From contig NC_092374.1 of the NCBI RefSeq assembly GCF_030028105.1, positions 181,119,487 through 181,183,486 of the forward strand: a stretch of 64,000 bases of DNA, in the 5' to 3' direction. Within the stretch, counting starts at the first letter, position 1. Every line of letters starts with the position of its first letter. Under the pieces are notes generated by a model, which saw nothing but the letters and a program-made list of their open reading frames with translations, was not told the origin of the DNA and searched no databases. Made by a program: the position numbers and the translations under genes. Below, in pieces: positions 596 through 44,621 of the stretch. The DNA comes from Mobula birostris (taxonomy: Eukaryota).

Positions 596-989
596 CTGAA
601 TATTGGGGAAGCAATAGGATTGGGCAGAATCCCAAATGTTCATCTTTGCTGATCTTATTCTCTTTTGAATTTAATGGAATAAGGTTTTGAGCAGTGTGTG
701 CAGTGGGCATACTTTCCAATCCTGGGGATTTTCATTTGACCAACTTGGTTAAAATCACACTACTGTTTTACCCAGTATGAGGAACAATTAAGGTTGGGCA
801 ATGCTGAGCCATGAACAAGAACATTCATGTCACTTTCATGAGCACAATTTGAACAAAGGTTTAAACCTTCAATTAATTACTGTGATCTACAGAAGAGCAT
901 TTGTTTGAACGTAGGCTGTCAGTGATCTATTTGAAGGCAACAGTGAACACAGAGTGTACTGGAGACTATGTCACAGCAGTCCTGCTTAC

Positions 990-1091
990 CTCCATGGGAT
1001 TTCACGATCAAATAGAGGAAGATAACGTAAACAACAAGTCCAATGTATCGAAGGTTAATTCCAATTCCCAGCAATGGCCCATTGTCTGTAT
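990..1091 (-). CDS. Gene A transmembrane exon (DTDNGPLLGIGINLRYIGLVVYVIFLYLIVKSHG)
   Basis: Acceptor ccatttctctcttcacatcttggacag|, donor G|gtaagc, 102 bp, phase 1-1, open frame with a 24-aa hydrophobic stretch followed by K-S-H; phase matches the V exon. Confidence 0.8.
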
Positions 1092-1231
1092 CTGTCCAAG
1101 ATGTGAAGAGAGAAATGGCAGATACTAATTATCATTTCAGTACATCCATCCCAGAAGCTTCAGTGTAGATAACTTTCCGATGCATTAATAATGGAATTAA
1201 TGGCTTCCCATTGACTAATATACCAGAAAAC

Positions 1232-4282: not shown

Positions 4283-5258
4283 TTTTAGACAATAGACAAT
4301 AGGTGCGGGAGTAGGCCATTTGACCCTTCGAGCCAGCACCGCCATTCTCTGTGATCATGGCTGATCATCCACAATCAGTATCCCCATACCCTTTGATTCC
4401 ACTATCTTTAAGAGCTCTATCCATCTCTTTCTTGATAACATCCAGAGACTTGGCCTTCACAGCATTCTGAGGCAGAGCATTCCATATATCCATCACTCTC
4501 TGGGTGAAAAAGTTTTTCCTCAACTCTGTTCTAAATGGCCTACCCCTTATTCTTAAACTGTGGCCTCTGGTTCTGGACTCACCCATCAGCGGGAACATGC
4601 TTCCTTCCTGCAGCATGTCCAATCCCTTAATAATCTTATATGTTTCAATAAGATCCTCTCTCAGCCTTCTAAATTTCAGAGTATACAAGCCCAGTCGCTC
4701 CAATCTTTCGACATATGACAGCCCCACCATCCTGGGAATTAACCTTGTGAACCTACATGGCACTCCCTCAATAGCAAAAATGTCCTTCCTCAAATTTGGA
4801 GACCAAAACTGCACACAGTTCAACTCATCCACCATTTCCTTTTTCCCCGTAATAAATTCACCCGCTTCTGTCTTCCAGGGCCCAATTTTGGTCTTAACTA
4901 TTTTTTTCCTTTTCACGTACCTAAAGAAGCTTTTACTATCCTCCTTTATATTCTTAGCTGGTTTACCTTCGTACCTCATTTTTTCTCTGCATATTGCCTT
5001 TTTAATTACCTTCTGTTGCTCTTTAAAAGTTTCCCAATCCTCCGGCTTCCCACTCATTTTTGCTATGTTATACTTCTTCTCTTTTATTTTTATACGATCC
5101 ATTACTTCCCTTGTCAGCCACGGCCTCCCCTTACTCTCCTTAAGATCTTTCTTCCTGTTTGGAATGAACTGATCCTGCACCTTCTGCATTATTCCCAGAA
5201 ACACTTGCCATTGCTGTTCCACTGTCATCCCTGCTAGGGTATTGTTCCATTGAACATT
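4283..5258 (-). mobile_element. CR1 LINE with internal deletion removing the RT domain
   Basis: ORF 4365-5270 joins the post-endonuclease region (KKIVKTKIGP...EMVDELN) directly to the ORF2 C-terminus (CVQFWSPNLRKDI...FFTQRV); tail tagacaatagacaatagg. Confidence 0.85.
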
Positions 5259-5702
5259 TGTGAGAGTCATTACCAGCTGGTAAAAATCTAAATGATGTAA
5301 ATAATGAAATTCTTCACCATTTTTTTTTACCTCTAACTTTCTGATGAAACTTTAAACATTCACAGTTTTTCCTCTTCAAAGATGCTGCCTGAGTTAATGA
5401 ATATTTCCGGTATTTTCTAATTAAACTAATTTATCTCTTAGGACATTGAAGATCTGTATAGTAAAGTATTTCAGCAAATATAAACACAAACCCAAACAAT
5501 TTTTAAAGCAAGTCCTACAGGCGTGAAACTGTGAAAAATAAACAAATTTTCAGGGTACGTTTGAATTTGACAATAATCTTGAACTTGACACCTGCTAATC
5601 ACTGTTGGCATCTACAATTGTTACCTACCAAACAACACAATCTGAGTGAAGACATTCTGAATAATTTAGCAAACTCACCCCACTCCTTCTGAGAGTACCA
5701 AC

Positions 5703-6077
5703 TGGTTCTATTACTGGTGTCTGGCTGAACCATCAATTTCAGACTGCGACTCTCAGTTCCCGCTGAGTGGCCGATGGATAAATAATAAATCCCGCTGTCG
5801 CTGATCTGCAAATCTCTCAGCAGCAAGGATGTGTTCTCCGGGAAAAGCACCGTTCGACCCTTATAGTGATCGTCAGTGAGCCTGGTCTGGGCACATCCAG
5901 CAAGGGTGCCATTTCTGCTTGAGGGGCATCGATAATCTGCAATTCTCCTCCCGGCTTTGGTCCACGTGATCCGCAGATACCCGTGTGAGTCCGGGTCGGT
6001 GTAAGAGGTGGGTAGGGGCACAGACTGCCCGACGGTTCCATTCATGCGGTCCTGATGCACAGTCAGTGTTACAGCAC
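5703..6077 (-). CDS. Gene A Ig V-set exon (HEPACAM/CD2/CEACAM-type, no canonical B-F Cys pair)
   Basis: Acceptor ccatctccactgttag|gt; donor A|gttggt, placed by alignment to the paralog; 375 bp, phase 1-1. Motifs NGTVGQSVPLP, LRITW, YKGRTVLFPENTSLLLRDLQISDSGIY, SLKLMV. Confidence 0.9.
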
Positions 6078-6574
6078 CTAACAGTGGAGATGGTAATTGT
6101 TTCATGATATGGTAACTCTATCGCAATAAAACATTATAGTTGCAAATACACGGTAAATCAGACCGAATCCGTGACAAATTTCTAGAATCTCCAATTGTTC
6201 TTTCTCTGTGAATAATAGATCAATTGTTTAAACCGTGGAGCAAAACCAGATGAAGTAAACATTTTCTGCGTTTCACATCTTTCCAAAAGCATATAAGGGT
6301 GTGATTAGGTACACGGACTCTACGCTGTCGTAATATTCCCTGTAAACTGTTTCTCCATTCATATATTTCACACCTTGCCCCGCCCAGCGCTGTTCTTGGA
6401 TCTCTTAGGCTTAATGCAGGAACTTTCTGCTTTCTGGGTCGAAGCTGCTTTCCAACATAAATTAAAATCTGTGAGATTATTGACGTTACACTGATATTAG
6501 TAAAATGACCAGCACAATAATTGTATCGCTCATTTATAAAGTATAACTAATGTAGACAATGACGGTCTTATGTA

Positions 6575-9358
6575 TTTGACTCGCAGGGTTGACACGTGGA
6601 ATTATGACGTTGTAGCAATTAGTGAAACTTGGCTACAGGAGGGGCAGGACTGGCAGTTCAATATTCCAGGGTTCCGATGTTTCAGATGTGATCGAGGCAG
6701 AGGAATGAAAGGTGGGGGAGTAGCATTGCTTGTCATGGAAAATGTTACAGCAGTGCTCAGGCAGGACAGATTAGAGGGCTTGTCTACTGAGTCCTTATGG
6801 GTGGAGCTGAGAAACAGGAAAGGCATGGCCACATTATTCGGGTTGAGTTATAGACCACCCAATAGTCAGCGAGAATTGGAAGAGCAAACCTGCAGAGAGA
6901 TTGCAGCAACTGCAGGAAACATAAAGTTGTGGTGGTAGGGGATTTTAATTTTCCATATATAGATTGGCACTCCCATACTGTTAGGGGTCTAGATGGTTTA
7001 GAGTTTGTAAAATGTGTTCAGGAAAGTTTTCTGAATCAATATACAGAGGGACCAACTAGAGGGGATGCAATATTGGATCTCCTATTAGGAAAGGAGTTAG
7101 GACAAATGAAGGAAGTCTGTGTAGGGGAGCACTTTGGTTCCAGTGATCATAACACCATTAGTTTCAACCTGATCATGGGCAAGGATAGATCTGGTCCTAG
7201 GGTTGAGGTTCTGAACTGGAAGAAGGCCAAATTTGAAGAAATGAGAAAGGATCTAAAAAGCGTGGATTGGGACAGGTTGTTCTCTGGCAAGGATGTGATC
7301 AGTAGGTGGGAAGCCTTCAAAGGAGAAATTTTGAGAGTGCAGAATTTGTATGTTCCTGTCAGGATTAAAAGCAAATTGAATAGGAATAAGGAACCTTGGT
7401 TCTCAAGGGATATTGCAACTCTGATAAAGAATAAGAGGGAGTTGTATGACATGTATAGGAAACAGGGAGTAAATAAGGTGCTTGAGGAGTATAAAAAGTG
7501 CAAGAAAATACTTAAGAAGGAAATCAGGAGGGCAGTCAAAGTGAAGGATAATCCAAAGAGCTTTTACAAGTATATTAAGAGTAAAAAGAGATAAAATTGG
7601 TCCTCTTGAAGATCAGAGTGGTCGGCTATGTGCGGAACCAAAAGAAATGGGGGAGATCTTAAATGGGTTTTTTGCGTCTGTATTTACTAAGGAAACTGGC
7701 ATGAAGTCTATGGAATTAAGGGAAACAAGTAGTGAGATCATGGAAAATGTACAGATCGAAAAGGAGGAGGTGCTTGCTATCTTGAGGAAAATTAAAGTGG
7801 TTAAATCCCCGGGACCTGACAGGGTGTTCCCAGGGACCTTGAAGGAGACTAGTGTTGAAATTGCAGGGGCCCTGGCAGAAATATTTAAAATGTCGGTGTC
7901 TATGGGTGAGGTGCCGGAGGATGAGAGTGGCTCATGTTGTTCCGTTGTTTAAAAAAGGATCGAAAAGTAATCCAGGAAATTATAGGCTGGTAAATTTGAT
8001 GTCGGTTGTGGGTAAGTTATTGGAGGGAGTACAAGCATTTGGCATCTACAAGCATTTGGATAGACAGGGACTTATTAGGGAGAGTCAACATGGCTTTGTG
8101 CGTGGCAGGTCATGTTTGACCAATCTATTGGAGTTTTTCGAGGAGGTTACCAGGAAAGTGGATGAAGGGAAGACAGTGGATATTGCTACATGGACTTCAG
8201 TAAGGCCTTTGACAAGGTCCCGCATGGGAGGTTAGTTAGGAAAATTCAGTCACTAGGTATACATGGAGAGGTGGTAAATTGGATTAGACATTGGCTCAAT
8301 GGAAGAAGCCAGAGTGGTGGTAGAGAATTGCTTCTCCGAGTGGAGGCCTGTGACTAGTGTTGTGCCACAGGGATCAGTGCTGGGTCCATTGTTATTTGTC
8401 ATCTATATCAATGATCTGTTTGATAATGTGGTTAATTGGATCAGCAAATTTGCTGATGATACAAAGATTGGAGGTGTAGTGTACAGTGAGGAAGGTTTTC
8501 AGAGCCTGCAGAGGGACTTGGACCAACTGGAAAAATGGGCTGAAAAATGGCAGATGGAGTTTAATACAGGCAAGTCTGAGGTATTGCACTTTGGAAGGAC
8601 AAACCAAGGTAGAATATATAGGGTAAATGGTAAGGCACTGAGGAGTGCAGTAGAACAGAGGGATCTGGGAATACAGATACAAAATTCCCTAAAAGTGTCG
8701 TCACAGGTAGATAGGGTCATAAAGAGAGCTTTTGGTACATTGGCCCTTATTAATCAAAGTATTGAGTATAAGAGCTGGAATGTTATGATGAGGTTGTATA
8801 AGGCATTGGTGAGGCTGAATCTGGAGTATTGTGTTCAGTTTTGGTCACCAAATTACAGGAAGGATATTAATGAGGTTGAAAGTGTGCAGAGAAGGTTTAC
8901 AAGGATGTTGCCGGGACTCGTGTAAAAGGTTGAAATAGGTTAGGACTTTATTCCCTGGAGTGTAGAAGAATGAGGGGAGATTTGATAGAGGTATATAAAA
9001 TTATGATGGGTATAGATAGAGTGAATGCAAGCAGGCTTTTTCCACTGAGGCAAGGGGAGAAAAAAAAACAGAGGACGTGGGTTAAGGATGAGGGGGGAAA
9101 AGTTTAAATGGAACATTAGGGGGGCTTCTTCACACAAAGAGTGGTGGGAGTATGGAATGAGCTGCCAGACGAGGTGGTAAATGGGGGTGGGATTCTTTTT
9201 TAACATTTAAGAATAAATTGGACAGATACATAGATGGGAGGTGTATGGAGGGATATGGTCCATGTGCAGGTCAGTGGGACTAGGCAGAAAATGGTTCGGC
9301 ACAGCCAAGAAGGGCCAAAAGGCCTGTTTCTGTGCTGTAGTTTTTCTATGGTTTCTAC
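6575..9358 (+). mobile_element. CR1 LINE, near-complete ORF2 (APE endonuclease + RT), frameshifted; in gene A intron 1
   Basis: [67 protein letters not shown]; tail tttctatggtttct. Confidence 0.95.
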
Positions 9359-9832: not shown

Positions 9833-12507
9833 ACATAGAAACCTACAGCACAATACAGGTGCTTCAGCCCACAATGATGTGCCAAACATGTACTTACCTC
9901 AGAAATTTCCTAGTGTTACCCATACCCCTCTATTTTTCTAAGCTCCAGTACCTGTCCAGGAGCCTCTTAATGGATCCTATCGTATCCACCTCCACCACCA
10001 TTGCCAGCAGCCCATTCCACGCACTCACCACTCTCTGCGTAAAAAAAGAACTTACCCCTGACATCTCCTCTATACCTGCTTCCAAGCACCTTAAAACTGT
10101 GCCCTCTCGTGTTAGTCATTTCAGTCCTGGGAAAAAGCCTCTGATTATCCACATGATCAATGTCTCTCATTATCGTGTACACCTCTATCGTCACCTCTCA
10201 TTCTCTGTCGCTCCAAGGAGAAAAGGTCGAGTTCACTCAACCTATTCTCATAAGGCATGCTCCCCACTCCAGGCAACATCCTTGTAAGTCTCCTCTGCAC
10301 CCCTTCTATGGTTTCCACATCCTTCCTGTAGTGAGGCAACCATAACTGAGCACAGTACTCCAAGTGGGGTCTGACCAGGGTCCTATATAGCTGCAACATT
10401 ACCTCTCGGCTCTTTAACTCAGTCCCATAGTTGATGAAGGCCAATGCACCGTATGCCTTCTCAACCACAGAGTCAACCTGTGTAGCAGCTTTGGATGTCC
10501 TATGGACTCAGACCCCAAGATCCCTCTGGTCCTCCACACTGCCAAGAGTCTTACCATTAATACTATATTCTGCCATCATATTTGACCTACCAAAATGAAC
10601 CACCTCATACTTATCTGGGTTGAGCTCCATCTGCCACTTCTCAGTCCAGTTTTGCACCCTATCGATGTCCCACTGTAACCTCCGATAGCCCTCCACACTA
10701 TCCACAACACCCCCAGCCTATGTGTCATCAGTAAATTTACTAACCCATCCCTCCACTTCCTTATCCAGGTCATTTATAAAAATCACAAAGAGTATGGGTC
10801 CCAGAACAGATCCCTGAGGCACACCACTGGTCACCGACCTCCATGCAGAATATGACCCATCTACAACCACTCTTTGCCTTCTGTGGGCAAGCCAGTTCTG
10901 GATCCACAAGACCCTAATTTACCCTGTAACTGCAGACCTATTTCTAAACTTCCATTCCTGTCAAAGCTTCTTGAAAAGATTATTCTCAGTCAATTACTGC
11001 ATTACTTACACCAAAACAACATCTTGGAAAGACTTCAGTCTGGTTTTAAGGCTTATCATAGCACAGAGTCTGCCCTGCTGAAAGTGTACAATGACCTGCT
11101 CCTCTCTATCCACTCAGGTGACTCTGCCATTCTAATTCTTCTTGACCTCAGCGCAGCATTCGATACTGTGGATCACGCCATTTTAATAGACAATCTCCAA
11201 TACAGGGTTGGTGTTGATGGCACTGCCTTGAACTGGTTTATAGCTTACCTCAAAAATAGAAGCTTCTCTGTCAACATAGGCAAATTCTCTTCTCCCTCAG
11301 CTAGTGGGGTCCCACAAGGTTCCATCTTAGGTCCCATCCTTTTCTCTATATATACGTGCTTCCCCCCTGCCAAATCATTCAAAATTATGACATTTCTTTC
11401 CACTGTTATGTTGACGACACACAGTTTTATCTCCCCCGAAACCAATGGACCAGTCAAAAATAACCAGCCTTATGAACTGCCTTGAGGACATAAAGTGTTG
11501 GAATGCACAAAACTTCTTACAGCTGAATGAAGGCAAGTCTGAAGTTGTCCTATTTGCCCCCCTGACTCCATCAAAGTGATTACCAACAGTCTTGGTAACT
11601 TGTCCACCCTTGTCAAACCCCATGTTAAATCCCTTGGTGTGATATTTGATTCCAGTTTTAAGTTTGACAAGCAAGTTAATGCAGCAGTAAAAGCCAGTTT
11701 TTTCCAGCTTCGTACTATTGCCAAAATCAAATAGTTTCTCCCTTTTAAAGATCTTGAGAAAGTCATCCATGCCCTTATATCCTCCCGCTTGGACTACTCC
11801 AACTCTCTGTATACTGGGATTAGTCAGTCGTCCCTGTCCCGCCTGCAACTGGTCCAGAATGCCGCAGCCAGGCTCCTGCTGGGTGCCTGGGACCATATTA
11901 CTCCTATCCTGGCCTCCCTCCACTGGCTGCCATTACAGTTCAGAATTGATTTTAAGATTCTCCTGTTTGTTTATAAAGCCCTAAATGGGCTAGCTCCCCC
12001 TTATATCACAGACCTCCTAACCCCATATTCTACTTCCAGGTCCCCCAGGTCGGCTGACTTGAGGCTCCTGGCTGTCCCGCGATCTAAACTTAAGTTCAGG
12101 GGTGACTGCACCTTTGCTATTGTAGCCCCTAGACTGTGGAACAGCATTTCCCTCCCTATCAGATCTACCCCCTCCATCGACTCTTTTAAATCCAGGCTCA
12201 AAACTTAATTTTATTCACTAGCGTTTGAATCCTCCTGATGTGGCTGATTTTTGGCGCGTGCCTGGGCCCATGTGTTGTTTCTTTTGTGCCTATAAGCTGT
12301 TTGCCTTGTTGGTTATGTCTGTGTTTCTTGTATTTGTGATTTTAGCTATCTGCCCTGATCTGTACAGTTCTTTGATGAATGTGGGTTGTTTTAAAATGTG
12401 CTATATAAGTATATCTGACTTGACTTAACTTGACAATGTCCAGTTGGATCCCATGCCTCCTTACTTTCTCAATAAGCCTTGCATGGGGTACCTTATCAAA
12501 TGCCTTC
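9833..12507 (-). mobile_element. CR1 LINE RT/3' part, interrupted by an L2
   Basis: Minus-strand ORFs [27 protein letters not shown]. The sequence ...gatccacaag|caatgtc... is contiguous in the CR1 copy at about 58.55 kb and is split here at 10908/12433. Confidence 0.85.
10909..12432 (+). mobile_element. L2-clade LINE (RT + 3' end) nested in CR1
   Basis: CRPISKLPFLSKLLEK, QSGFKAYHSTESALL, LLDLSAAFDTVDH, HITPILASLHWLP, FKILLFVYKALNGLAP; tail tgacttgacttaacttga. Confidence 0.9.
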
Positions 12508-12719: not shown

Positions 12720-12780
12720 CATTAATAGCAAAGAGATGTGAAAAAAAGATGTCAACATACACTCCCAAAATCTCTTTAAA
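12720..12780 (-). CDS. Gene A leader-like exon (FKEILGVYVDIFFSHLFAIN-G)
   Basis: Donor G|gtgagg in phase 1. Aligns with the gene B leader exon (KE..G......F..L...NG) and its upstream flank (aaacttaagttactttcaaca vs aaactcaacttactctaaca). No in-frame ATG found. Confidence 0.55.
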
Positions 12781-13082
12781 CTGCACTTCAATTGTTGAAA
12801 GTAACTTAAGTTTATAGAAGGATGTTCAGCCATTGTAAATACAGAAAAATCGACAGTTGTATTGATCAAATCTTGTGTTGGGGACTCCAATGAGATCTGG
12901 GATGGGGGTCTGCTCGGGTTTAACATATTGACGAGGGCCAAACCAACCCCAGCACTATTTTCTGCTTCCCTCAGGCAGAAGTGCATAGAAAACAATGCAA
13001 ACAACGTCTTCATGTATTTAATATGTCTGTGATGGGAGTGTGTAAAGACAGCGTTGCATTATTAGTGAGATTTTTTTTTAAA

Positions 13083-14649: not shown

Positions 14650-17600
14650 CCAGGGGCCGTGTTTTGTATTGTGTGTGGATGCAGGAAGTCCGGGAGACAT
14701 CCAGCCTCCCAGATAAACACATCTGCACCAGGTGTATTGAATTGCAGCTCCTGAGAGAACAGATTAGGGAACCAGAGATGCAGCTCGATGACCTTTGACA
14801 CATGGGAGAATGAGGAGGTGATAGACAGGAGCTACAGGGAGGTAGTCACACTGAGATTGCAGGAGATAACCAAATGACTGTCAGGAGAAGGAGGGGAAAT
14901 GCACAGCCAGTGCAGAGTACACCTGTGGCCATTTCCTCAGTAATAATTATACAACTTTAGATATTGTGAGTTTAATGTTGAAGGATACACACTGCATCCA
15001 AAGGATAGGCAGGAAGGCAGATGGGTAGCGTTATTCTGTTGGTAAAAAAATAAATCAAATCATTAGAAAGAGGTGACATAGGGTCGGAAGGTGTTGATTC
15101 ATTGTGGATAGAGCTAAGGAACTGCAAGAGTAAAAGGACCCTGATGGGAGATGTATACTGACCCCCAAACATTAGTGAGGATGTGGTCTACAAATGACAA
15201 TGGGAGATAAAAATGCATTACAAGAGGCAGTACCCTCTTGGGATATTTCCATATGCAGGCAGATTGGGGAAATCAGGTTGGTGCTGAATCCCAAGAGAAG
15301 GATTTCTAGAATGCCTACAAGGTGGCTTTTTAGAGCAGCTCATTGTTGAGCCCACAAGGGGAATCAGCTATTCTGGACTGGGTGTTGTGTGATGAACCAG
15401 AACTGATTAGAGATCTTTAAGGTAAGGGAACCCTTAGGGGAAAGTGATCAAAATAAAATTGAATTCACTCTGAAATTTGAGAAGGAGAAGTTAAAGTCAG
15501 ATGTATCAGTACTACCATAGAGTAAAGGGAATTACAGAGGCATGAGAGAGAAGTTGGCCAAAATTGATTGGAAAAGAACACTGGCAGGGATGATGGCAGA
15601 GCAACAAAGGCTGGAATTTCTGCAAACAATTTGGAAAGCACAGAATACATACATCTCAAAGAGGAAGGAATATTCTGAAGGAAAGTTGTCACAACTGTGG
15701 CTAACAAGAGAAGTCAAAGCCAACATAAAAGCCAAAGAGACAACATATAACTGAGCAACAATTAGTGGAAGCTAGAGGATTGGGAAGCTTTTAAAAACCA
15801 ACAGAAGGCAACTGAAAAGTAATTAAGATATAGCTGGAATATGAAAGTAAGCTAACCAATAATATTAATGGTGATAAAAAATGTTTCTTCAGATACATAA
15901 GGTGGAACAGCGAGAAGAGAGTGGATATCTACAATTGGAAAATCATGCTGGAGAGGTAGTAATTGGGGTCACGGAAATGGCAGACAAACTGAATGAGTAT
16001 TTTGTATCATTCTTCACTGAGGAAAACACTAGCAGTATGGTGTATGGTGGAAGTTCAAGGTGTCAGGTGTCACAAAATGTGTGAAGTTATCATAACTAGA
16101 GAGAAGTTTCTTGGGAGACTTAAAGATCTGAAGGTAAATAAGTCACCCAGACCAGATGGTGTACACCCCCAGGATTCTGAAAGAAGAGGTAGAAGAGATT
16201 GTGGAGATATTAGTAATGATCTTTCAAGAATCAGTAGATTCTGGAATGGTTTTAGAAGACTGGAAAATTGCAAATGTCATTCCACTCATCAACAAGGGAG
16301 AGAAGCAGAATAAAAGGAAATTATAGGCCAGTTAGGCTGACCTCAGAGGTTGGGAAGATGTTGGAGTTGATTGTTTTGGGGTACTTGGAGATACATGATA
16401 AAATAGACTGTAGTCAGCATGATTTCCTTAAGGAAAAAATCTTGTCTGACATATCTGTTGGAACTCTCTGAAGAAGTAACAAGCTGGATAGACAAAGGAG
16501 AATCAGTTGATGTTGTGTACTTGCATTTTCAGAAGGCCTTTGACAAGATGCCACACGAAGCTGCTTAACAAGCTACGAGCCCATAGTTTTACAGGAAAGA
16601 TTCTAGCATGGATAATTGGCAGTGACTGATTGGCAGGAGATGAAGAGTGGGCTGCTGGTGACTAGTGGGGTTCTGCAGGGATCTGTGTTGGGACCAATTC
16701 TTTTTACATTACATTACAATGATTTGAATGATGGAATTGCTGGCTCTGTTGTAAAGTTTGCAAAAAATATGAAGATAAGTGGAGGGGCAGGTAGTTTTGA
16801 GGAAGTAGAGAGGCTACAGAAGGAATTAGGCAGATTAGGTGAATGGCCAGATTAGAAGCAGTAGATGGCATACTATATTGGAAAGTGTATAGTCATGAAC
16901 TTTGGGAGAAGAAATGAAAGGGTTGACTATACAAGATACAAAAAACTGAGGTGTAAAGGGACTTGGGAATCCTTGAGCAGGAATCCCTAAAGGTTACTTT
17001 GCAGGGTGAGTCTGTGGTGAGGAAGGCAAATGTGATGTTAGCATTCATTTCAAGAGGACTAGAACGTAAAAGCAAGGTTGTAATGTTGAAACTTTATAAA
17101 GCACTGGTGAGGCCTCACTTGGAATATTATGGGCAGTTTTGGGCTCCTTCTCTTAGAAAGGATGTACTGAAAGTCAAGAGGGTTCAAAGGAGGTTCACAA
17201 AAATAATTCCAGGTTTTAGTGGCCTATCGTATGAAGAGTGTTGATGGCTCTGGACCAGTATTCACTTGAATTCGGAAAAAATGAGGTGTTACCTCATTGA
17301 AACCTATCAAATGATGAAAGGCCTTGATAGAGTGGATGTGGAGAGGATGTTTCCTATGGTATAAGAGTCAAAGACCAGAGGACACAGCCTCAGAATAGAA
17401 GGGTGTCCTTTTAGAACAGTGATTATGAGGAGGTTCTTTAGTCAGATAGTGGTGAATTTGTGGAATACATTGCCACTGGCAGCTGTGGAGGCCAAATCTC
17501 TATGCATATTTAAGGCAGAGGTTGATAGATTCTTGATTGGTCAGGGTATGAAGGGATACGGGGAGAAATCAGGAGATCGGGGCTGAGAGGAAAATGGATT

Positions 17601-21590: not shown

Positions 21591-22069
21591 CTTGTGTTCA
21601 AGACATGCCCATTGTTTCTCTCTGTAGTATAATGAATCATGGAAAAGCTGTCAAGTTTTGATGGAAAGCTCTACTTCAACAATTGACCAGGTATCTCTCG
21701 TCAGTGTTTTTCTGCAGTATAAATTAATTTAGATTTTTTTCTACATCTTTCCTATCCATTATTCCAGATGATAATCATAATGAAAGAAATGCTCGAGGCC
21801 AGAGCTTCCCTTTTACCAGTCCCCATGGCATATTGATCCTGGCTTAAAATGCATTTATCAATAGTTAAGTAAAATGGAGGTCATAATGAACATATTCTTG
21901 AAGTGTTAGTCAATGTCATTAATGTACACAAATAATTTCAAAGCTCCCAGTTGTCACAAAACAAGAAAATGAGGTAAACAATGAGGTTTCAGTCCAGCCC
22001 CATGGGCCTTCTTTTGGTGTTGGATTGGCAGACCATTAGATATTGCTCCAAAGAAATTTGTTCATTTCA

Positions 22070-24360: not shown

Positions 24361-24729
24361 CCATTCTATCAGACGGCTGCACGGTCAAGTACAAACTGCC
24401 TTTTTCAGTTCCCGTTGAGCAGCTAATGGATAATTCATAAATCCCGCTGTCGCTGGTCTGCAAATCTTTCATCAGTAAGGATGCATTCTCTGGAAAAAGC
24501 ACGGCCCGGTATTTATAGTGGTCGGCAATGGGAATGGTGTGGGTAAATCCAACTAAGTTGCCGTTTCTGTCCGAGGGACATCGAAAATCTACAATTCTTG
24601 TGCCGGTCTTGGTCCATGTGATCCGCAGATACCCGCCCGAGTCTGAGTTGGTGTAGGAGGCCGGTAGGAGCACAAACTGTCCGACCGTCCCTGTCAGGCG
24701 GTCCGGATGCATTCTCAGTGTTACAGCGG
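24361..24729 (-). CDS. Gene B Ig V-set exon, paralog of 5703-6077
   Basis: Acceptor gctatttttcctttag|cc, donor G|gtaggt, 369 bp, phase 1-1; TGTVGQFVLLPASY, LRITW, YKYRAVLFPENASLLMKDLQTSDSGIY; 79/119 aa identical to gene A by manual alignment. Confidence 0.9.

Positions 24730-25352: not shown

Positions 25353-25414
<62 letters not shown>
25353..25414. repeat. (GT)n microsatellite, about 31 units
   Basis: Seen directly in the sequence. Confidence 0.97.
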
Positions 25415-25416
<2 letters not shown>

Positions 25417-25917: not shown

Positions 25918-25978
25918 CGTTAACAACAACGAGGTAGGTAAAAAGATAGAAGCTGCACAGCCCAGAAGCTTCTTTCAA
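25918..25978 (-). CDS. Gene B leader (signal peptide) exon (LKEASGLCSFYLFTYLVVVN-A)
   Basis: Strong donor G|gtaaga in phase 1; hydrophobic core; spliced product VVNA/AVTL fits a -3/-1 cleavage site. No in-frame ATG (TTG at 25976-25978; possible acceptor at 26005). Confidence 0.6.
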
Positions 25979-26519
25979 TGGCACTTTGTCGGAGGCCGTG
26001 TTTACTGTTAGAGTAAGTTGAGTTTCTGGAATGAGTATTTAAATGCCGTGTTGATACTCGTCCAGTCTCGGCTTAGGGATGGACCTCAGCTCAGCAGCAG
26101 CTCAGGTAGTTCGGTGCTTCCGGGAAGAGCGAGTGGACTATCTAAATTTACATAAGAGTTAAATACTTCATTGGCCGTATACGATCGCTGTTCGACACTA
26201 GATTCACACTACGGAAAAATAATATTGCAACGCCAAGTTCAAGCAAATGACTCTCGACCCCGCCTTCCCACCAAGAAACAAACCATTAACATTCAACACT
26301 TTCTCGAGAACAAAGGCAATCACACAGACGTAAACTATTGCTCTTAGGCCACGTGCAACAGTCTTTGTCTCTGACCTGCTGGGGGGCGCATTTCTCCAAA
26401 TCTCTTTCAGATACACTGATAACAACAGGGCGGTTGCTTCCTACACTTCTGCAGAACTCGAAAATATCATCACTTTTCCAATCAGTTCTCATTCCGCCGT
26501 CAACTTCAGGAGCCTCCAA

Positions 26520-28909: not shown

Positions 28910-31900
28910 AGACGAGGCAAAGCAGGGCTGTGGGCAGGAGCCTTGAGGCGAAGCGAGGCGAGGCTGGGGGTAGGAGCCTTGAGGCGAGGCGAGGCGATGC
29001 TGAGGGCAGGAGCTTTGAGGTGAGGCGAGGCAAAGCAAGGCGATGCTGAGGGCAGGAGCCTGGAGACGAGGCAAGGCTGGGGGTACGAGCCTTGAGGTGA
29101 AGCGAGGCTGGGGGTACGAGCCTTGAGGCGAGGTGAGGCGAGGCTGGGGGAAGGAGCCTTGAGGCGAGGCGAGGCTGGGGGCAGGAGCCTAGAGGTGAGG
29201 CGAGGCTGAGGCTGGGGACAGGAGCCTTGAGGTGAGGCGAGGCTGAGGGCAGGAGCCTTGAGGCGAAGTGAAGCGAGGCTGTGGGCAGGAGCCTTGAGGT
29301 GAGGTGAGGTGAGGCGAAGCTGGGGGCAGGAGCCTTGAGGCGAGGCTGGGGGCAGGAGCCGTGAGGCGAGGCGAGGCTGGGGGCAGCAGACTTCAGGTGA
29401 GGCGAGGCTGGGGGCAGGAGCCGTGAGGCGAGGTGAGGCTGGGGGCAGCAGACTGCAGGTGAGGCGAGGCTGGGGGCAGGAGCTCTGAGGCGAGGTGAGG
29501 CTGGGGGCAGGAGTCTTGAGGCAAGGGGAGGCGAGGCTGAGGGCAGGAGCCTAGAGGTGAGGCGAGGCTGGGGGCAGGAGCCTTGAGGCGAGGCGAGGCT
29601 GGGGGCAGGAGCCTTGAGGCGAGGCGAGGCGACTCTGAGGGCAGGAGCCTTGAGGCGAGGTGAGGCTGGGGGCAGGAGTCTTGAGGCAAGGGGAGGCGAG
29701 GCTGAGGGCAGGAGCCTTGAGGCGAGGCGAGGCGAGGCGAAGCGAGTCTGAGGGCAGGAGCCTTGAGGCGAGGCGAGGCTGGGGGGCAGGAGCCTTGAGG
29801 CGAGGCGAGGCTGGGGGCAGAAGCCTTGAGGTGAGGGGAGGCGAGGCTGAGGACAGGAGCCTTGAGGCGAGGCTGGGGGCAGGAGCCTTGAGGCAAGGGG
29901 AGGCGAGGCTGGGGACAGGAGCCTTGAGGCGAGGCGAGGCGACTCTGAGGGCAGGAGCCTTGAGGCGAGACGAGGCGAGGCGAAGCGAGGCTGAGGACAG
30001 GAGCCTTGAGGCGAGGCGAGGCTGGGGGCAGAAGCCTTGAGGTGAGGGGAGGTGAGGCTGAGGACAGGAGCCTTGAGGCGAGGTGAGGCTGGGGGGCAGG
30101 AGCCTTGAGGCGAGGCGAGGCGAGGCTGAGGACAGGAGACTTGAGGCGAGGCGAGGCGAGGCTGAGGGCAGGAGCCTTGAGGCGAGGTGAGGCTGGGGGG
30201 CAGGAGCCTTGAGGCGAGGCGAGGCGAGGCTGAGGACAGGAGCCTTGAGGCGAGGCGAGGCGAGGCTGAGGACAGGAGACTTGAGGCGAGGCGAGGCTGG
30301 GTGCAGGAGCCTTGAGGCTAGGCGAGGCGAGGCGAGGCTGGGGGCAGGAACCTTGAGGGGAGGCGAGGCTGAGGACAGGAGCCTTGAGGCGAGGTGAGGC
30401 TGAGGGCAGGAGCTTTGAGGCGAGGTGAGGCTGAGGACAGGAGACTTGAGGTGAGGCGAGGCTGGGGGCAGGAGCTTTGAGGCGAGGTGAGGCTGAGGAC
30501 AGGAGACTTGAGGTGAGGCGAGGCTGGGGGCAGGAGCTTTGAGGCGAGGTGAGGCTGAGGACAGGAGACTTGAGGTGAGGCGAGGCTGGGGGCAGGAGCT
30601 TTGCGGCGAGGCGGGGCTGGGGGCAAAAACATTGAGGCGAGGTGAGGCGAGGCTGAGGGCAGGAGCCTTGAGGTGAGGCGAGGCTGGGGGCAGGAGCTCT
30701 GAGGCGAGGTGAGGCTGGGGGCAGGAGTCTTGAGGCAAGGGGAGGCAAGGCTGAGGGCAGGAGCCTAGAGGTGAGACGAGGCGAGGCGAAGCGAGTCTGA
30801 GGGCAGGAGCCTTGAGGCGAGACGAGGCGAGGCGAAGCGAGTCTGAGGGCAGGAGCCTTGAGGCGAGGCGAGGCTGGGGACAGGAGCCTTGAGGCGAGGC
30901 GAGGCGACTCTGAGGGCAGGAGCCTTGAGGCGAGACGAGGCGAGGCGAAGCGAGGCTGAGGACAGGAGCCTTGAGGTGAGGCGAGGCTGGGGGCAGGAGC
31001 CTTGAGGTGAGGGGAGGCGAGGCTGAGGACAGGAGCCTTGAGGCGAGGTGAGGCTGGGGGGCAGGAGCCTTGAGGCGAGGCGAGGCGAGGCTGAGGACAG
31101 GAGACTTGAGGCGAGGCGAGGCGAGGCTGAGGGCAGGAGCCTTGAGGCGAGGTGAGGCTGGGGGGCAGGAGCCTTGAGGCGAGGCGAGGCGAGGCTGAGG
31201 ACAGGAGACTTGAGGCGAGGCGAGGCTGGGTGCAGGAGCCTTGAGGCGAGGTGAGGCGAGGCTGGGGGCAGGAACCTTGAGGTGAGGCGAGGCTGGGGGC
31301 AGGAACCTTGAGGCGAGGTGAGGCGAGGCTGAGGGCAGGAGCCTTGAGGCTAGGCGAGGTGAGGCGAGGCTGGGGGCAGGAGCCTTGAGGCGAGGCGAGG
31401 CGAGGCTGAGGGCAGGAGCCTTGAGGGGAGGCGAGGCTGGGAGTAGGAGCCTTGAGGCAAGGCGAGGCGAGGCTGAGGGCAGGAGCCTAGAGGAGAGGCG
31501 AGGCTGGGTGTAGGATCCTTGAGGCGAGGCGAGGCGAGGCGAAGCGAGTCTGAGGGCAGGAGCCTTGAGGCGAGGTGAGGCGAGGCTGAGGGCAGGAGCC
31601 TTGAGGCGAGGTGAGGCGAGGCTGGGGGCAGGAGCCTTGAGGCGAGGCGAGGCGAGGCTGGGAGCAGGAGCCTGGAGGCGAGGCGAGGCTGGGGGCAGGA
31701 GCCTTGAGGCGAGGCTGGGGGCAGGAGCTCTGAGGCGAGGCGAGGCTGGGGGCAGGAGCCTTGAGGCGAGGCGAGGCTGGGGGCAGGAGCCTTGAGGCGA
31801 GGCGAGGCGACTCTGAGGGCAGGAGCCTTGAGGCGAGGTGAGGCTGGGGGCAGGAGTCTTGAGGCAAGGGGAGGCGAGGCTGAGGGCAGGAGCCTTGAGG

Positions 31901-34900
31901 CGAGGCGAGGCGAGGCGAAGCGAGTCTGAGGGCAGGAGCCTTGAGGCGAGGCGAGGCTGGGGGCAGAAGCCTTGAGGTGAGGGGAGGCGAGGCTGAGGAC
32001 AGGAGCCTTGAGGCGAGGCTGGGGGCAGGAGCTGTGAGGCGAGGCGAGGCTGGGGGCAGGAGTCTTGAGGCAAGGGGAGGCAAGGCTGAGGGCAGGAGCC
32101 TAGAGGTGAGGCGAGGCTGGGGGCAGGAGCCTTGAGGCGAGGCGAGGCTGGGGACAGGAGCCTTGAGGCGAGGCGAGGCGACTCTGAGGGCAGGAGCCTT
32201 GAGGCGAGACGAGGCGAGGCGAAGCGAGGCTGAGCACAGGAGCCTTGAGGTGAGGGGAGGCGAGGCTGAGGACAGGAGCCTTGAGGCGAGGTGAGGCTGG
32301 GGGGCAGGAGCCTTGAGGCGAGGCGAGGTGAGGCTGAGGACAGGAGACTTGAGGCGAGGCGAGGCGAGGCTGAAGGCAGGAGCCTTGAGGCGAGGCGAGG
32401 CGAGGCTGAGGACAGGAGACTTGAGGCGAGGCGAGGCTGGGTGCAGGAGCCTTGAGGCTAGGCGAGGCGAGGCGAGGCTGGGGGCAGGAACCTTGAGGGG
32501 AGGCGAGGCTGAGGACAGGAGCCTTGAGGCGAGGTGAGGCTGAGGGCAGGAGCTTTGAGGCGAGGTGAGGCTGAGGACAGGAGACTTGAGGTGAGGCGAG
32601 GCTGGGGGCAGGAGCTTTGAGGCGAGGCGGGGCTGGGGGCAAAAACATTGAGGCGAGGTGAGGCGAGGCTGGGGGCAGGAGCCTTGAGGTGAGGTGAGGC
32701 TGGGGGCAGGAGTCTTGAGGCAAGGGGAGGCGAGGCTGAGGGCAGGAGCCTAGAGGTGAGACGAGGCGAGGCGAAGCGAGTCTGAGGGCAGGAGCCTTGA
32801 GGCGAGGCGAGGCTGGGGGCAGAAGCCTTGAGGTGAGGGGAGGCGAGGCTGAGGACAGGAGCCTTGAGGCGAGGCTGGGGGCAGGAGCTGTGAGGCGAGG
32901 CGAGGCTGGGGGCAGGAGTCTTGAGGCAAGGGGAGGCAAGGCTGAGGGCAGGAGCCTAGAGGTGAGGCGAGGCTGGGGGCAGGAGTCTTGAGGCAAGGCG
33001 AGGCGAGGCTGGGGGCAGGAGCCTTGAGGCGAGGCGAGGCTGGGGACAGGAGCCTTGAGGCGAGGCGAGGCGACTCTGAGGGCAGGAGCCTTGAGGCGAG
33101 ACGAGGCGAGGCGAAGCGAGGCTGAGGACAGGAGCCTTGAGGTGAGGGGAGGCGAGGCTGAGGACAGGAGCCTTGAGGCGAGGTGAGGCTGGGGGGCAGG
33201 AGCCTTGAGGCGAGGCGAGGTGAGGCTGAGGACAGGAGACTTGAGGCGAGGCGAGGCGAGGCTGAGGGCAGGAGCCTTGAGGCGAGGCGAGGCGAGGCTG
33301 GGGCAGGAACCTTGAGGGGAGGCGAGGCTGAGGACAGGAGCCTTGAGGCGAGGTGAGGCTGAGGGCAGGAGCTTTGAGGCGAGGTGAGGCTGAGGACAGG
33401 AGACTTGAGGTGAGGCGAGGCTGGGGGCAGGAGCTTTGAGGCGAGGCGGGGCTGGGGGCAAAAACATTGAGGCGAGGTGAGGCGAGGCTGGGGGCAGGAG
33501 CCTTGAGGTGAGGCGAGGCTGAGGGTAGGAGCCTTGAGGCGAGGCGAGGCTGGGGGGCAGGAGTCTTGAGGCAAGGGGAGGCGAGGCTGAGGGCAGGAGC
33601 CTTGAGGCGAGGCGAGGCTGGGGGCAGAAGCCTTGAGGTGAGGGGAGGCGAGGCTGAGGACAGGAGCCTTGAGGCGAGGCTGGGGGCAGGAGCTGTGAGG
33701 CGAGGCGAGGCTGGGGGCAGGAGTCTTGAGGCAAGGGGAGGCAAGGCTGAGGGCAGGAGCCTAGAGGTGAGGCGAGGCTGAGGGCAGGAGCCTTGAGGTG
33801 AGGCGAGGCGACTCTGAGGGCAGGAGCCTTGAGGCGAGACGAGGCGAGGCGAAGCGAGGCTGAGGACAGGAGCCTTGAGGCGAGGCGAGGCTGGGGGCAG
33901 AAGCCTTGAGGTGAGGGGAGGCGAGGCTGAGGGTAGGAGCATTGAGGCGAGGTGAGGCGAGGCTGGGGGGCAGGAGCCTTGAGGCGAGGCGAGGCGAGGC
34001 TGAGGACAGGAGCCTTGAGGCGAGGTGAGGCTGGGGGGCAGGAGCCTTGAGGCGAGGCGAGGCTGAGGGCAGGAGCCTTGAGGGGAGGCGAGGCTGAGGG
34101 CAGGAGACTTGAGGCGAGGCGAGGCTGGGTGCAGGAGCCTTGAGGCGAGGTGAGGCTGGGGGGCAGGAGCCTTGAGGGGAGGCGAGGCTGAGGGTAGGAG
34201 CATTGAGGCGAGGTGAGGCGAGGCTGGGGTGCAGGAGCCTTGAGGTGAGGCGAGGCTGAGGGCAGGAGCCTTGAGGCGAGGCGAGGTGAGGCTGAGGGCA
34301 GGAGCCTTGAGGCAAGGCGAGGCTGGGGGCAGGAACCTTGAGGGGAGGCGAGGCTGAGGACAGGAGCCTTGAGGCGAGGTGAGGCTGAGGGCAGGAGCTT
34401 TGAGGCGAGGTGAGGCTGAGGACAGGAGACTTGAGGTGAGGCGAGGCTGGGGGCAGGAGCTTTGAGGCGAGGCGGGGCTGGGGGCAAAAACATTGAGGCG
34501 AGGTGAGGCGAGGCTGGGGGCAGGAGCCTTGAGGTGAGGCGAGGCTGGGGGCAGGAGCCTTGAGGCGAGGCGAGGCTGGGTGTAGGATCCTTGAGGCGAG
34601 GCGAGGCGAGGCGAAGCGAGTCTGAGGGCAGGAGCCTTGAGGCGAGGCGAGGCTGGGGGCAGGAGCCTTGAGGTGAGGCGAGGCGAGGCTGAGGGCAGGA
34701 GCCTTGAGGCGAGGCGAGGCAAGGCTGAGGGCAGGAGCCTTGAGGCGAGGCGAGGCGAGGCTGGGAGCAGGAGCCTGGAGGCGAGGCGAGGCTGGGGGCA
34801 GGAGGCTTGAGGCGAGGTGAGGCGAGGCTGAGGGTAGGAGCCTTGAGGCGAGGCGAGGCAAGGCTGAGGACAGGAGACATGAGGTGAGGCGAGGCTGGGG

Positions 34901-37900
34901 GCAGGAGTCTTGAGGTGAGGCGAGGCTGGGGGCAGGAGACTTGAGGTGAGGCGAGGCGAAGCTGGGGGTAGGAGCCTTGAGGCAAGGCGAGGGTGGGGGC
35001 AGAAGCCTTGAGGCGAGGTGAGGCGAGGCTGAGGGCAGGAGCCTTGAGGCGAGGTGAGGCGAGGCTGGGGGCAGGAGCCTTGAGGTGAGGCAAGGCGAGG
35101 CTGAGGACAGGAGACTTGAGGTGAGGTGAGGCGAGGCGAGACTGGGGGCAGGAGCCTTGAGGTGAGGCAAGGCGAGGGGAGGTGAGGCTGACGGCAGGGG
35201 CCTTGACGTGAGGGGAGGCGAGGCTGGGGGCAGGAGCCTTGAAGTGAGGGGAGGCGAGGCTGGGGGCAGGAGCCTTGAGGGGAGGCGAGGCGAAGCTGGA
35301 GGTAGGAGCCTTGAGGCAAGGCGAGGGTGGGGGCAGAAGCCTTGAGGCGAGGGGAGGTGAGGCTGGGGGCAGAAGCATTGAGGCGAGGGGAGGTGAGGCT
35401 GAGGACAGGAGACTTGAGGCGAGGCGAGGCGAGGCTGAGGGCAGGAGCCTTGAGGCGAGGCGAGGCGAGGCTGAGGACAGGAGACTTGAGGCGAGGCGAG
35501 GCTGGGTGCAGGAGCCTTGAGGCTAGGCGAGGCGAGGCGAGGCTGGGGGCAGGAACCTTGAGGGGAGGCGAGGCTGAGGACAGGAGCCTTGAGGCGAGGT
35601 GAGGCTGAGGGCAGGAGCTTTGAGGCGAGGTGAGGCTGAGGACAGGAGACTTGAGGTGAGGCGAGGCTGGGGGCAGGAGCTTTGAGGCGAGGCGGGGCTG
35701 GGGGCAAAAACATTGAGGCGAGGTGAGGCGAGGCTGGGGGCAGGAGCCTTGAAGCGAGGCGAGGTTGGGAAAAGGAGCCTTGAGGCAAGGCAAAGCGAGG
35801 CTGGGGGCAGGAGCCTTGAGGCTATGCGAGGTGAGGCGAGGCTGGGGGCAGGAGCCTAGAGGAGAGGCGAGGCTGGGTGTAGGATCCTTGAGGCGAGGCG
35901 AGGCGAGGCGAAGCGAGTCTGAGGGCAGGAGCCTTGAGGCGAGGTGAGGCTGAGGGCAGGAGCCTTGAGGCGAGGTGAGGCTGAGGGCAGGAGCTTTGAG
36001 GCGAGGTGAGGCTGAGGACAGGAGACTTGAGGTGAGGCGAGGCTGGGGGCAGGAGCTTTGAGGCGAGGCGGGGCTGGGGGCAAAAACATTGAGGCGAGGT
36101 GAGGCGAGGCTGGGGGCAGGAGCCTTGAAGCGAGGCGAGGTTGGGAAAAGGAGCCTTGAGGCAAGGCAAAGCGAGGCTGGGGGCAGGAGCCTTGAGGCTA
36201 TGCGAGGTGAGGCGAGGCTGGGGGCAGGAGCCTAGAGGAGAGGCGAGGCTGGGTGTAGGATCCTTGAGGCGAGGCGAGGCGAGGCGAAGCGAGTCTGAGG
36301 GCAGGAGCCTTGAGGCGAGGTGAGGCTGAGGGCAGGAGCCTTGAGGCGAGGCGAGGCTGGGAGCAGGAGCCTTGAGGCGAGGCGAGGCTGGGGGCAGGAG
36401 GCTTGAGGGGAGGTGAGGCGAGGCTGAGGGTAGGAGCCTTGAGGCGAGGCGAGGCTGGGGGGCAGGAGTCTTGAGGCAAGGGGAGGCGAGGCTGAGGGCA
36501 GGAGCCTAGAGGTGAGGCGAGGCTGGGGGGCAGGAGCCTTGAGGTGAGACGAGGCGAGGCGAAGCGAGTCTGAGGGCAGGAGCCTTGAGGCGAGGCGAGG
36601 CGAGGCTGGGGGCAGGAGCCTTGAGGCGAGGTGAGGTGAGGCTGAGGACAGGAGACTTGAGGCGAGGCGAGGCGAGGCTGAGGACAGGAGACTTGAGGCG
36701 AGGCGAGGCTGAGGGCAGGAGCCTTGAGGCAAGGCGAGGCGAGGCTGAGGACAGGAGACTTGAGGCGAGGCGAGGCTGAGGGCAGGAGCCTTGAGGCAAG
36801 GCGAGGCGAGGCTGAGGACAGGAGACTTGAGGCAAGGTGAGGCAAGGCTGAGGACAGGAGACTTGAGGCGAGGCGAGGCTGGGGGCAGGAGCCTTGAGGC
36901 AAGGCGAGGCGAGGCTGAGGACAGGAGACTTGAGGCGAGGCGAGGTTGGGAGAAGGAGCCTTGAGGCGAGGCGAGGTGAGGCTGGGAGAAGGAGCCTTGA
37001 GGCGAGGCGAGGCGAGGCTGAGGACAGGAGACTTGAGGTGAGGCGAGGCGAGGCTGAGGACAGGAGACTTGAGGTGAGGTGAGGTGAGTCTGAGGGCAGG
37101 AGCCTTGAGGCGAGGCGAGGCGAGGCTGAGGACAGGAGACTTGAGGCGAGGCGAGGCTGAGGGCAGGAGCCTTGAGGCAAGGCGAGGCGAGGCTGAGGAC
37201 AGGAGACTTGAGGCGAGGCGAGGCTGAGGGCAGGAGCCTTGAGGCAAGGCGAGGCGAGGCTGAGGACAGGAGACTTGAGGCAAGGTGAGGCGAGGCTGAG
37301 GACAGGAGACTTGAGGCGAGGCGAGGCTGAGGGCAGGAGCCTTGAGGCGAGGCGATGCTGGGAGCAGGAGCCTTGAGGCGAGGCGAGGCTGGGGGCAGGA
37401 GGCTTGAGGGGAGGTGAGGCGAGGCTGAGGGTAGGAGCCTTGAGGCGAGGCGAGGCTGGGGGGCAGGAGTCTTGAGGCAAGGGGAGGCGAGGCTGAGGGC
37501 AGGAGCCTAGAGGTGAGACGAGGCGAGGCGAAGCGAGTCTGAGGGCAGGAGCCTTGAGGCGAGGCGAGGCGAGGCTGGGGGCAGGAGCCTTGAGGCGAGG
37601 TGAGGTGAGGCTGAGGGCAGGAGCCTTGAGGTGAGGCGAGGCTGGGGGGCAGGAGCCTTGAGGTGAGACGAGGCGAGGCGAAGCGAGTCTGAGGGCAGGA
37701 GCCTTGAGGCGAGGCGAGGCGAGGCTGGGGGCAGGAGCCTTGAGGCGAGGTGAGGTGAGGCTGAGGGCAGGAGCCTTGAGGTGAGGCGAGGCTGGGGGCA
37801 GGAGCCTTGAGGTGAGGTGAGGCTGAGGGCAGGAGCCTTGAGGCGAGGCGAGGCGAGGCTGAGGACAGGAGACTTGAGGCGAGGCGAGGTGAGGCTGAGG

Positions 37901-43900: not shown

Positions 43901-44610
43901 GCCTTGAGGCGAGGCGAGGCTGAGGGTAGGAGCCTTGAGGCGAGGGGAGGTGAGTCTGGGGGCAGAAGCCTTGAGGCGAGGGGAGGTGAGGCTGAGGGCA
44001 GGAGCCTTGAGGCGAGGGGAGGTGAGGCTGGGGGCAGGAGCCTTGAGGCGAGGGGAGGTGAGGCTGAGGGCAGGAGCCTTGAGGCTAGGCGAGGCGAGGC
44101 GAGGCTGGGGGCAGGAGCCTTGAGGCTAGGCGAGGTGAGGCTGGGAGAAGGAGCCTTGAGGCGAGGCGAGGCGAGGCTGAGGACAGGAGACTTGAGGCGA
44201 GGCGAGGCGAGGCTGTGGACAGGAGACTTGAGGTGAGGCGAGGTTGGGAGAAGGAGCCTTGAGGCAAGGCGAAGCGAGGCTGGGGGCAGGAGCCTTGAGG
44301 TGAGGCGAGGCGAGGCTGAGGACAGGAGACTTGAGGTGAGGTGAGGTGAGGCGAGGCGAGGCGAGGCTGGGGGTAGGAGCCTTGAGGCAAGGCGAGGGTG
44401 GGGGCAGAAGCCTTGAGGCGAGGGGAGGTGAGGCTGGGGGCAGGAGCATTGAGGCGAGGTGAGGCTGAGGCTGAGGGCAGGAGCCTTGAGGCGAGGGGAG
44501 GTGAGGCTGGGGGCAGGAGCCTTGAGGCGAGGGGAGGTGAGGCTGGGGGCAGGAGCCTTGAGGCGAGGGGAGGCGAGGCTGGGGGCAGGAACCTTGAGGC
44601 GAGTGGAGGC
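28910..44610. repeat. Giant G-rich compound minisatellite, about 15.7 kb; unit (GAGG[C/T])n + TG[A/G]GG[G/A]CAGGAGCCTT, mostly 26/31/36/41 bp (+/-1)
   Basis: Continuous across the interval; roughly 500 units estimated from length divided by unit size; G- and A-rich on the + strand. Confidence 0.97.
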
Positions 44611-44621
44611 GAAAGTGGGGG

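Follow-up and report, generated by a model that had tools for sequence, protein, structure and literature searches.

Gene structure at the locus

The window, meaning the whole analyzed stretch of 64,000 nucleotides of Mobula birostris (contig NC_092374.1, positions 181,119,487 to 181,183,486), carries on its minus strand two V-set exons and one transmembrane (TM) exon. The membrane-distal V-set exon V_B lies at 24361..24729 (phase 1-1; Pfam V-set E ~1e-8), the membrane-proximal V-set exon V_A at 5679..6077 (phase 1-1; Pfam V-set E 2e-8), and the TM exon at 990..1091. Joined together, exons 24712..24361, 6077..5679 and 1091..990 give a translation identical to residues 1-284 of P0163, a model of M. 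birostris that NCBI calls an 'uncharacterized protein' and that was returned by a region-restricted protein search. Both the exon and the gene are already predicted in the NCBI annotation, where the gene span of P0163 is 34.3 kb. Past the TM exon the model continues with a tail of 33 residues (GCKRTQVQ...NPTE), none of them tyrosine. The tail exons are located outside the window, beyond its start, and the tail is taken from the NCBI model alone.

The two V domains are 65% identical to each other. V_A lacks the canonical cysteines of the B and F strands and has a short stalk at its end (…DTSNRTSWYSQKEW). All three coding exons of the window are open, with canonical splice sites and without frameshifts or stops, and their identity to the orthologues is 81-89%. 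The earlier note had treated 'gene A' as a gene separate from a 'gene B'. This division did not hold, as both V exons and the TM exon belong to one V-V-TM model (P0163), and in the annotation of three ray species a single V-V-TM gene stands in place of the two, the orthologous models being P0151 of Hypanus sabinus and P0002 of Hemitrygon akajei. The predicted layout of the manta gene is leader - V - V - TM - short tail.

When the window was scanned, no C2-type Ig exon was found between the V exons or before the TM exon. Tblastn searches with the TM peptide and 12 family proteins detected neither a separate TM exon for 'gene B' nor any tail exons in the window. The best TM-like match, at 21985..21959, is interrupted by stops and was rejected.

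The introns are filled by LINE fragments at 4368-5270 (minus), 6570-8925 (plus), 10157-12208 and 15542-17244 (plus). Three of the four LINE ORFs scanned gave Pfam matches to RVT_1 and endonuclease-reverse transcriptase domains, and the ORF at 4368-5270 gave no Pfam match. A perfect (GT)31 microsatellite is present at 25353-25415, within the intron that separates the leader exon from V_B. About 3 kb upstream of the leader exon the window also includes a G-rich minisatellite of 15.7 kb (28926-44612), with periods of 36 and 67, a GC content of ~68% and a strong GC skew.

Leader exon and start codon

A homologue of the leader (signal-peptide) exon was found on the minus strand at 25918..25984 (V-PLKEASGLCSFYLFTYLVVVN, donor AAC G/gtaaga). 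At 25984..25982, where the Hypanus orthologue has its start ATG (the leader of P0151 begins MPLKEVSG...), the manta exon has GTG. An in-frame TAA is located 19 codons upstream of the GTG, at 26041..26039, with no ATG between the two, and when leader exons with an ATG were sought ab initio, nothing convincing emerged. Because the manta leader lacks an ATG, NCBI's P0163 begins at a methionine inside V_B, at 24712, and has no signal peptide. The GTG at 25982-25984 may represent the loss of the start codon, a polymorphism or non-AUG initiation.

The missing ATG, the upstream TAA and the start of P0163 inside its first V domain could also mean that the manta gene is a recently disabled copy, either a pseudogene or a null allele, and that its TM exon, though intact, is a relic without activity in this animal. 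The Hemitrygon model P0002, which also begins inside a V domain, points in the same direction. Against this, the three coding exons are open, correctly bordered by splice sites and as similar to the orthologues as stated above. Furthermore, a purine at position -3 of the GTG could allow low-level non-AUG initiation, the GTG might be a polymorphism, or the ATG might be provided by an upstream exon not yet seen. A disabled copy is rated as less likely than not, although it is a reading to be taken seriously.

A second, relic leader-like exon is located on the minus strand at 12720..12792 (…FKEILGVYVDIFFSHLFAIN G/gtgagg; E 0.075 to the leader of P0006). It includes no ATG and its hydrophobic core is weakened, and its gtgagg donor is intact in phase 1. 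The relic lies upstream of V_A, within the 18-kb intron between V_B and V_A and amid LINE fragments. Its position suggests that V_A once headed a gene of its own and that the two-V gene was born by fusion of tandem leader-V units.

The transmembrane exon

The TM exon (990..1091, minus) is 102 nt long, has phase 1-1 and matches residues 251-284 of P0163 exactly, encoding the peptide (D)TDNGPLLGIGINLRYIGLVVYVIFLYLIVKSHG(G). Given this exact match it is no chance ORF. The minus-strand translation of window positions 984-1095 reads TDTDNGPLLGIGINLRYIGLVVYVIFLYLIVKSHGGK, and stops are present in both other frames. Also the splice sites are canonical, with the acceptor ...cttggacag/AT before 1091 and the donor GAG/gtaagc after 990. 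The bounds of the exon and the peptide quoted in the earlier note were thereby reproduced exactly. The asparagine codon AAC is located at 1056..1054 and the arginine codon CGA at 1050..1048, and exactly 15 hydrophobic residues separate the arginine from the following lysine.

The earlier note had argued that a full helix must take in both the asparagine and the arginine. The hydropathy profile agrees, as windows of 19-23 residues need both residues to attain TM length, and such windows have a mean Kyte-Doolittle value of ~2.1. AlphaFold2, run with the family alignment (mean pLDDT 71), predicted a single helix INLRYIGLVVYVIFLYLIVKSH (INLRY...KSH) of ~20 residues, in which the asparagine is at position 2 and the arginine at position 4; the local pLDDT of 52-82 gives modest support. 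The arginine is thus placed inside the predicted helix, in line with the proposal that it lies within the bilayer.

Directly past the TM exon, read-through of the donor at 922-989 (minus) would give KQDCCDIVSSTLCVHCCLQIDH followed by a stop. This peptide resembles the tail of Scyliorhinus P0009 (KWSCCETVSDLCC...), and it may represent a conserved intron start or an alternative isoform with a short tail.

The shark and ray receptor family

Among 1.8 billion representative proteins a profile search produced 825 matches, the best of which were proteins of sharks and rays. These top matches carry a single V domain, except for the orthologues, which have two, and are named 'uncharacterized' or 'HEPACAM-like' by NCBI. 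Region-restricted searches for more TM-type relatives added only P0163 and P0164. A paper describing this V-set family of sharks and rays was not found in the literature search.

The TMs of the family fall into two classes. The Arg class includes Mobula P0163 (INLRY), Hypanus P0151 and Hemitrygon P0002 (IHLRY), Hemitrygon P0008 (ANARY), Rhinoraja P0019 (ANIRY), the three shark proteins Scyliorhinus P0009, Stegostoma P0013 and Hemiscyllium P0164 (AKIRY), and Hemitrygon P0001 (VIIRI). The tails of this class are short or moderate and lack ITIM-type motifs. The Pro class (P0005, P0006, P0007, P0010, P0012, P0014 and P0015) has uncharged TMs with Pro-Pro or Pro-Ala (ILPPVG, IIPPVV, ILPAVG). Its tails are mostly long, being short in P0007 and P0012, and those of P0005, P0006, P0014 and P0015 include the ITIM-like motifs YAEL, VEYATV or VEYDKI.

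The tree of the V domains interleaves the two TM classes, with five label changes, no fewer than with shuffled labels. Furthermore, P0001 (Arg) and P0005 (Pro) of a single species are identical at 115 of the first 120 aligned residues of the V domain, and their TMs are homologous, differing by arginine versus proline. As judged from the sequences, such interleaving together with such twins typifies paired activating and inhibitory receptors whose signalling modules are swapped or converted. A paired family with an activating twin of the Arg type is in itself a well-known design, and the manta gene would be an Arg-type activating member of a paired V-set receptor family of sharks and rays.

Conservation of the arginine and the asparagine

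The arginine is kept in all nine activating-type sequences, which represent seven species (Mobula, Hypanus, Hemitrygon with three sequences, Rhinoraja, Scyliorhinus, Stegostoma and Hemiscyllium). These include the two ray orthologues P0151 and P0002 as well as five shark and ray paralogues (P0008, P0009, P0013, P0019 and P0164), and the conservation of the arginine on which the proposal of the earlier note depended was thus found in both orthologues and paralogues. In the Arg class the arginine is followed by 15 hydrophobic residues and then by lysine, for which P0019 has Gly-Met-His. A tyrosine directly after the arginine (R-Y) is nearly invariant, being present in eight of the nine sequences. 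The same column is occupied by proline in seven of seven inhibitory-type sequences. In P0001 the arginine was apparently re-acquired independently, at the same column of an inhibitory-type TM.

The asparagine shows no such conservation. Its column holds histidine in both orthologues, lysine in Scyliorhinus, Stegostoma and Hemiscyllium, and isoleucine in P0001, and N-x-R is found elsewhere only in P0008 and P0019. The earlier note had read N-L-R as the N-L-x-R motif of mammalian receptors shortened by one residue, and this part of it was abandoned, since in addition to the variable asparagine the helical phase is different. A residue at i-2 is ~200 degrees from the arginine, in comparison to 300 degrees at i-3, and with this difference of 100 degrees N-L-R is no structural equivalent of N-L-x-R. 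The asparagine two residues before the arginine would rather be a variable polar residue of the membrane interface, outside any conserved motif. The conserved feature, as far as the alignment reflects it, is the arginine, kept across the split between sharks and rays.

The TM exon aligns column for column with the uncharged TM exon of the family itself, which fits an origin within the family. For this reason, and because the N-x-x-R feature failed, the exon was not filed as an NxxR-type TM.

Comparison with named receptor systems

The NxxR receptors coupled to FcRgamma (LILRA2, PIR-A, NKp46, GPVI, OSCAR and FcalphaRI, and in Xenopus XFL, ILR and CD2/SLAM members) are likewise type I proteins of the immunoglobulin superfamily. 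Like the manta protein they have a single arginine that lies N-terminally in the TM and precedes ~15-16 hydrophobic residues, a short tail without tyrosine motifs, and inhibitory twins with uncharged TMs (PMC2413239, PMC4536121, PMC1440944). The manta protein differs from them in that its asparagine is at -2 instead of -3 and is not conserved. There is a difference also at the other end of the helix: TMs of the LRC receptors end in an acidic residue and tryptophan or histidine, whereas the manta helix ends in lysine.

The occurrence in one species of near-identical ectodomains with opposite TM and tail modules is similar to KIR2DL/2DS, PIR-B/PIR-A, CEACAM1/CEACAM3 and SIRPalpha/beta. Unlike these classical paired families, the shark and ray ectodomain consists of V or V-V only, with no C2 domain, and so far the family has been encountered only in sharks and rays. 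From type I receptors coupled to DAP12 the manta protein differs by its charged residue, which is an arginine at helix position 4 of ~20 and not a central lysine.

The V domain resembles those of HEPACAM/HEPACAM2, the 'CEACAM-like' proteins and CD2/SLAM members (2B4) in being a V-set domain without the canonical disulphide and in its motif FPENASLLLxDLQxxDSGIY. In HEPACAM, CEACAM and SLAM proteins the V domain is followed by a C2 domain, whereas the models here are V-V-TM or V-TM. Among many V-set matches, the nearest named folds in Foldseek were HEPACAM (25-26% identity, rmsd 3.2 A) and HEPACAM2, and in language-model features the V domain resembles single-V proteins of the VSTM5 type. The Pfam match to V-set was clear, and Pfam assigned no family beyond it to the V domain, Receptor_2B4 being at threshold only (21.7 bits against a cutoff of 21). 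Attempts to name the V domain were given up, as a PDB profile search produced generic Ig matches only, and the Foldseek/Atlas matches (VSTM5, HEPACAM, TIGIT and sodium-channel beta subunits) are generic V+TM proteins. At ~20-26% identity the sequences allow no claim of orthology to HEPACAM, CEACAM or CD2/SLAM.

The next HMMER neighbours after the sharks and rays were 'CEACAM-like' proteins of frogs and birds. The frog 'CEACAM3-like' proteins P0016, P0047, P0078, P0115 and P0131 have an arginine at the start of the TM (e.g. FITRIILCF) and tails of 3-9 residues, and in some of the frog members with a TM arginine the tail is 3-6 residues long. These distant anuran relatives indicate that Arg-type members are widespread in the V-set superfamily.

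Proposed adaptor coupling and its alternatives

The manta model and its relatives present a type I TM with a single arginine about one turn from the outer end, a tail without tyrosine, and inhibitory twins, and an adaptor-coupled activating receptor is a plausible interpretation of these features. The arginine, located roughly one turn inward from the helix's outer end, would pair with the two aspartates of an ITAM adaptor dimer joined by disulphide, and the receptor would depend on this dimer to reach the surface, to signal or to do both. An FcRgamma/CD3zeta-type module would be likelier than DAP12, judging by the placement of the arginine in the TM's N-terminal segment. The gene of the manta itself would perhaps be disabled or unconventionally translated, as GTG replaces ATG in its leader. 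Taken together, an Arg-type receptor paired with an FcRgamma/CD3zeta-type adaptor, with the asparagine outside the motif and the manta copy possibly disabled, is considered the probable explanation, if not by a wide measure. Its weaker points are the low confidence of AlphaFold2 at the start of the TM, and the manta leader exon without an ATG together with an NCBI model without a signal peptide.

An arginine only 3-4 residues into the helix could also snorkel to the lipid headgroups without any partner. It would then be an interfacial residue of an adaptor-free receptor, which could be a non-signalling decoy, serve in adhesion or signal through its own short tail. The position of the arginine, fourth in the helix and following a Gly/Pro-rich, partly hydrophobic stretch, is consistent with snorkelling, and so is the residue at -2, which varies among polar residues (N/H/K) as an interfacial position would. 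However, the arginine is strictly conserved, opposed to proline in the inhibitory twins, it always accompanies the loss of ITIM-like motifs, and in P0001 it was gained a second time at the same column. According to the positive-inside rule a basic residue on the exoplasmic side is disfavoured in a type I TM unless it is paired, and an arginine conserved against this rule makes a pairing partner likelier than mere snorkelling. Snorkelling alone is rated improbable.

The Arg-Tyr pair and the FLCFTVKT-type helix are unlike the TMs of the mammalian partners of FcRgamma, and the arginine might instead dock an adaptor of the DAP12/DAP10 type or an undescribed, lineage-specific one. The choice of an FcRgamma/CD3zeta-type module over DAP12 follows from a published rule of position, by which all receptors assembling with FcRgamma have an arginine in the TM's N-terminal segment, while the type I partners of DAP12 have a lysine near its centre (PMC1440944). 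With arginine at helix position 4 the family agrees with the former, and docking of the other adaptors is regarded as having little likelihood. In Xenopus, NxxR TMs confer association with FcRgamma (PMC2413239), and such TMs are present also in the Xenopus CD2/SLAM family (PMC4536121).

On the adaptors of sharks the literature search for FcRgamma, DAP12 or CD3zeta found only the survey of Akula et al. (2014), with no useful result for the CD3zeta of sharks. That survey reported no FcRgamma in the shark data of its time (PMC4016189). This single report counts against the FcRgamma part of the preferred explanation, and it favours both snorkelling and an adaptor of the DAP12/DAP10 or other type.

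Implications for cartilaginous fish

The analysis corrects the picture of the locus in two respects: 'N-L-R' is no conserved motif, and what looked like two genes is one annotated V-V-TM gene, of which the manta copy lacks an ordinary start codon. Judging by the sequences, a V-domain-only family of cartilaginous fish, the most ancient of the living jawed vertebrates, has the paired activating/inhibitory design, including a charged TM residue by which an ITAM adaptor is presumably recruited. The family provides a concrete arginine, with natural proline counterparts, that could be used to probe which adaptor cartilaginous fish employ.

A bolder version of the proposal, held to be doubtful at present, is that this undescribed V-only paired family has carried a TM arginine with a neighbouring tyrosine (R-Y) in the outer leaflet since the split between sharks and rays, and has re-invented this arginine by Pro-to-Arg change in inhibitory-type TMs. 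If FcRgamma is truly absent from cartilaginous fish, the arginine would then dock CD3zeta or an undescribed adaptor. If this were true, the Arg-based adaptor coupling of innate receptors would date to the base of the jawed vertebrates, with a partner unlike the mammalian one.
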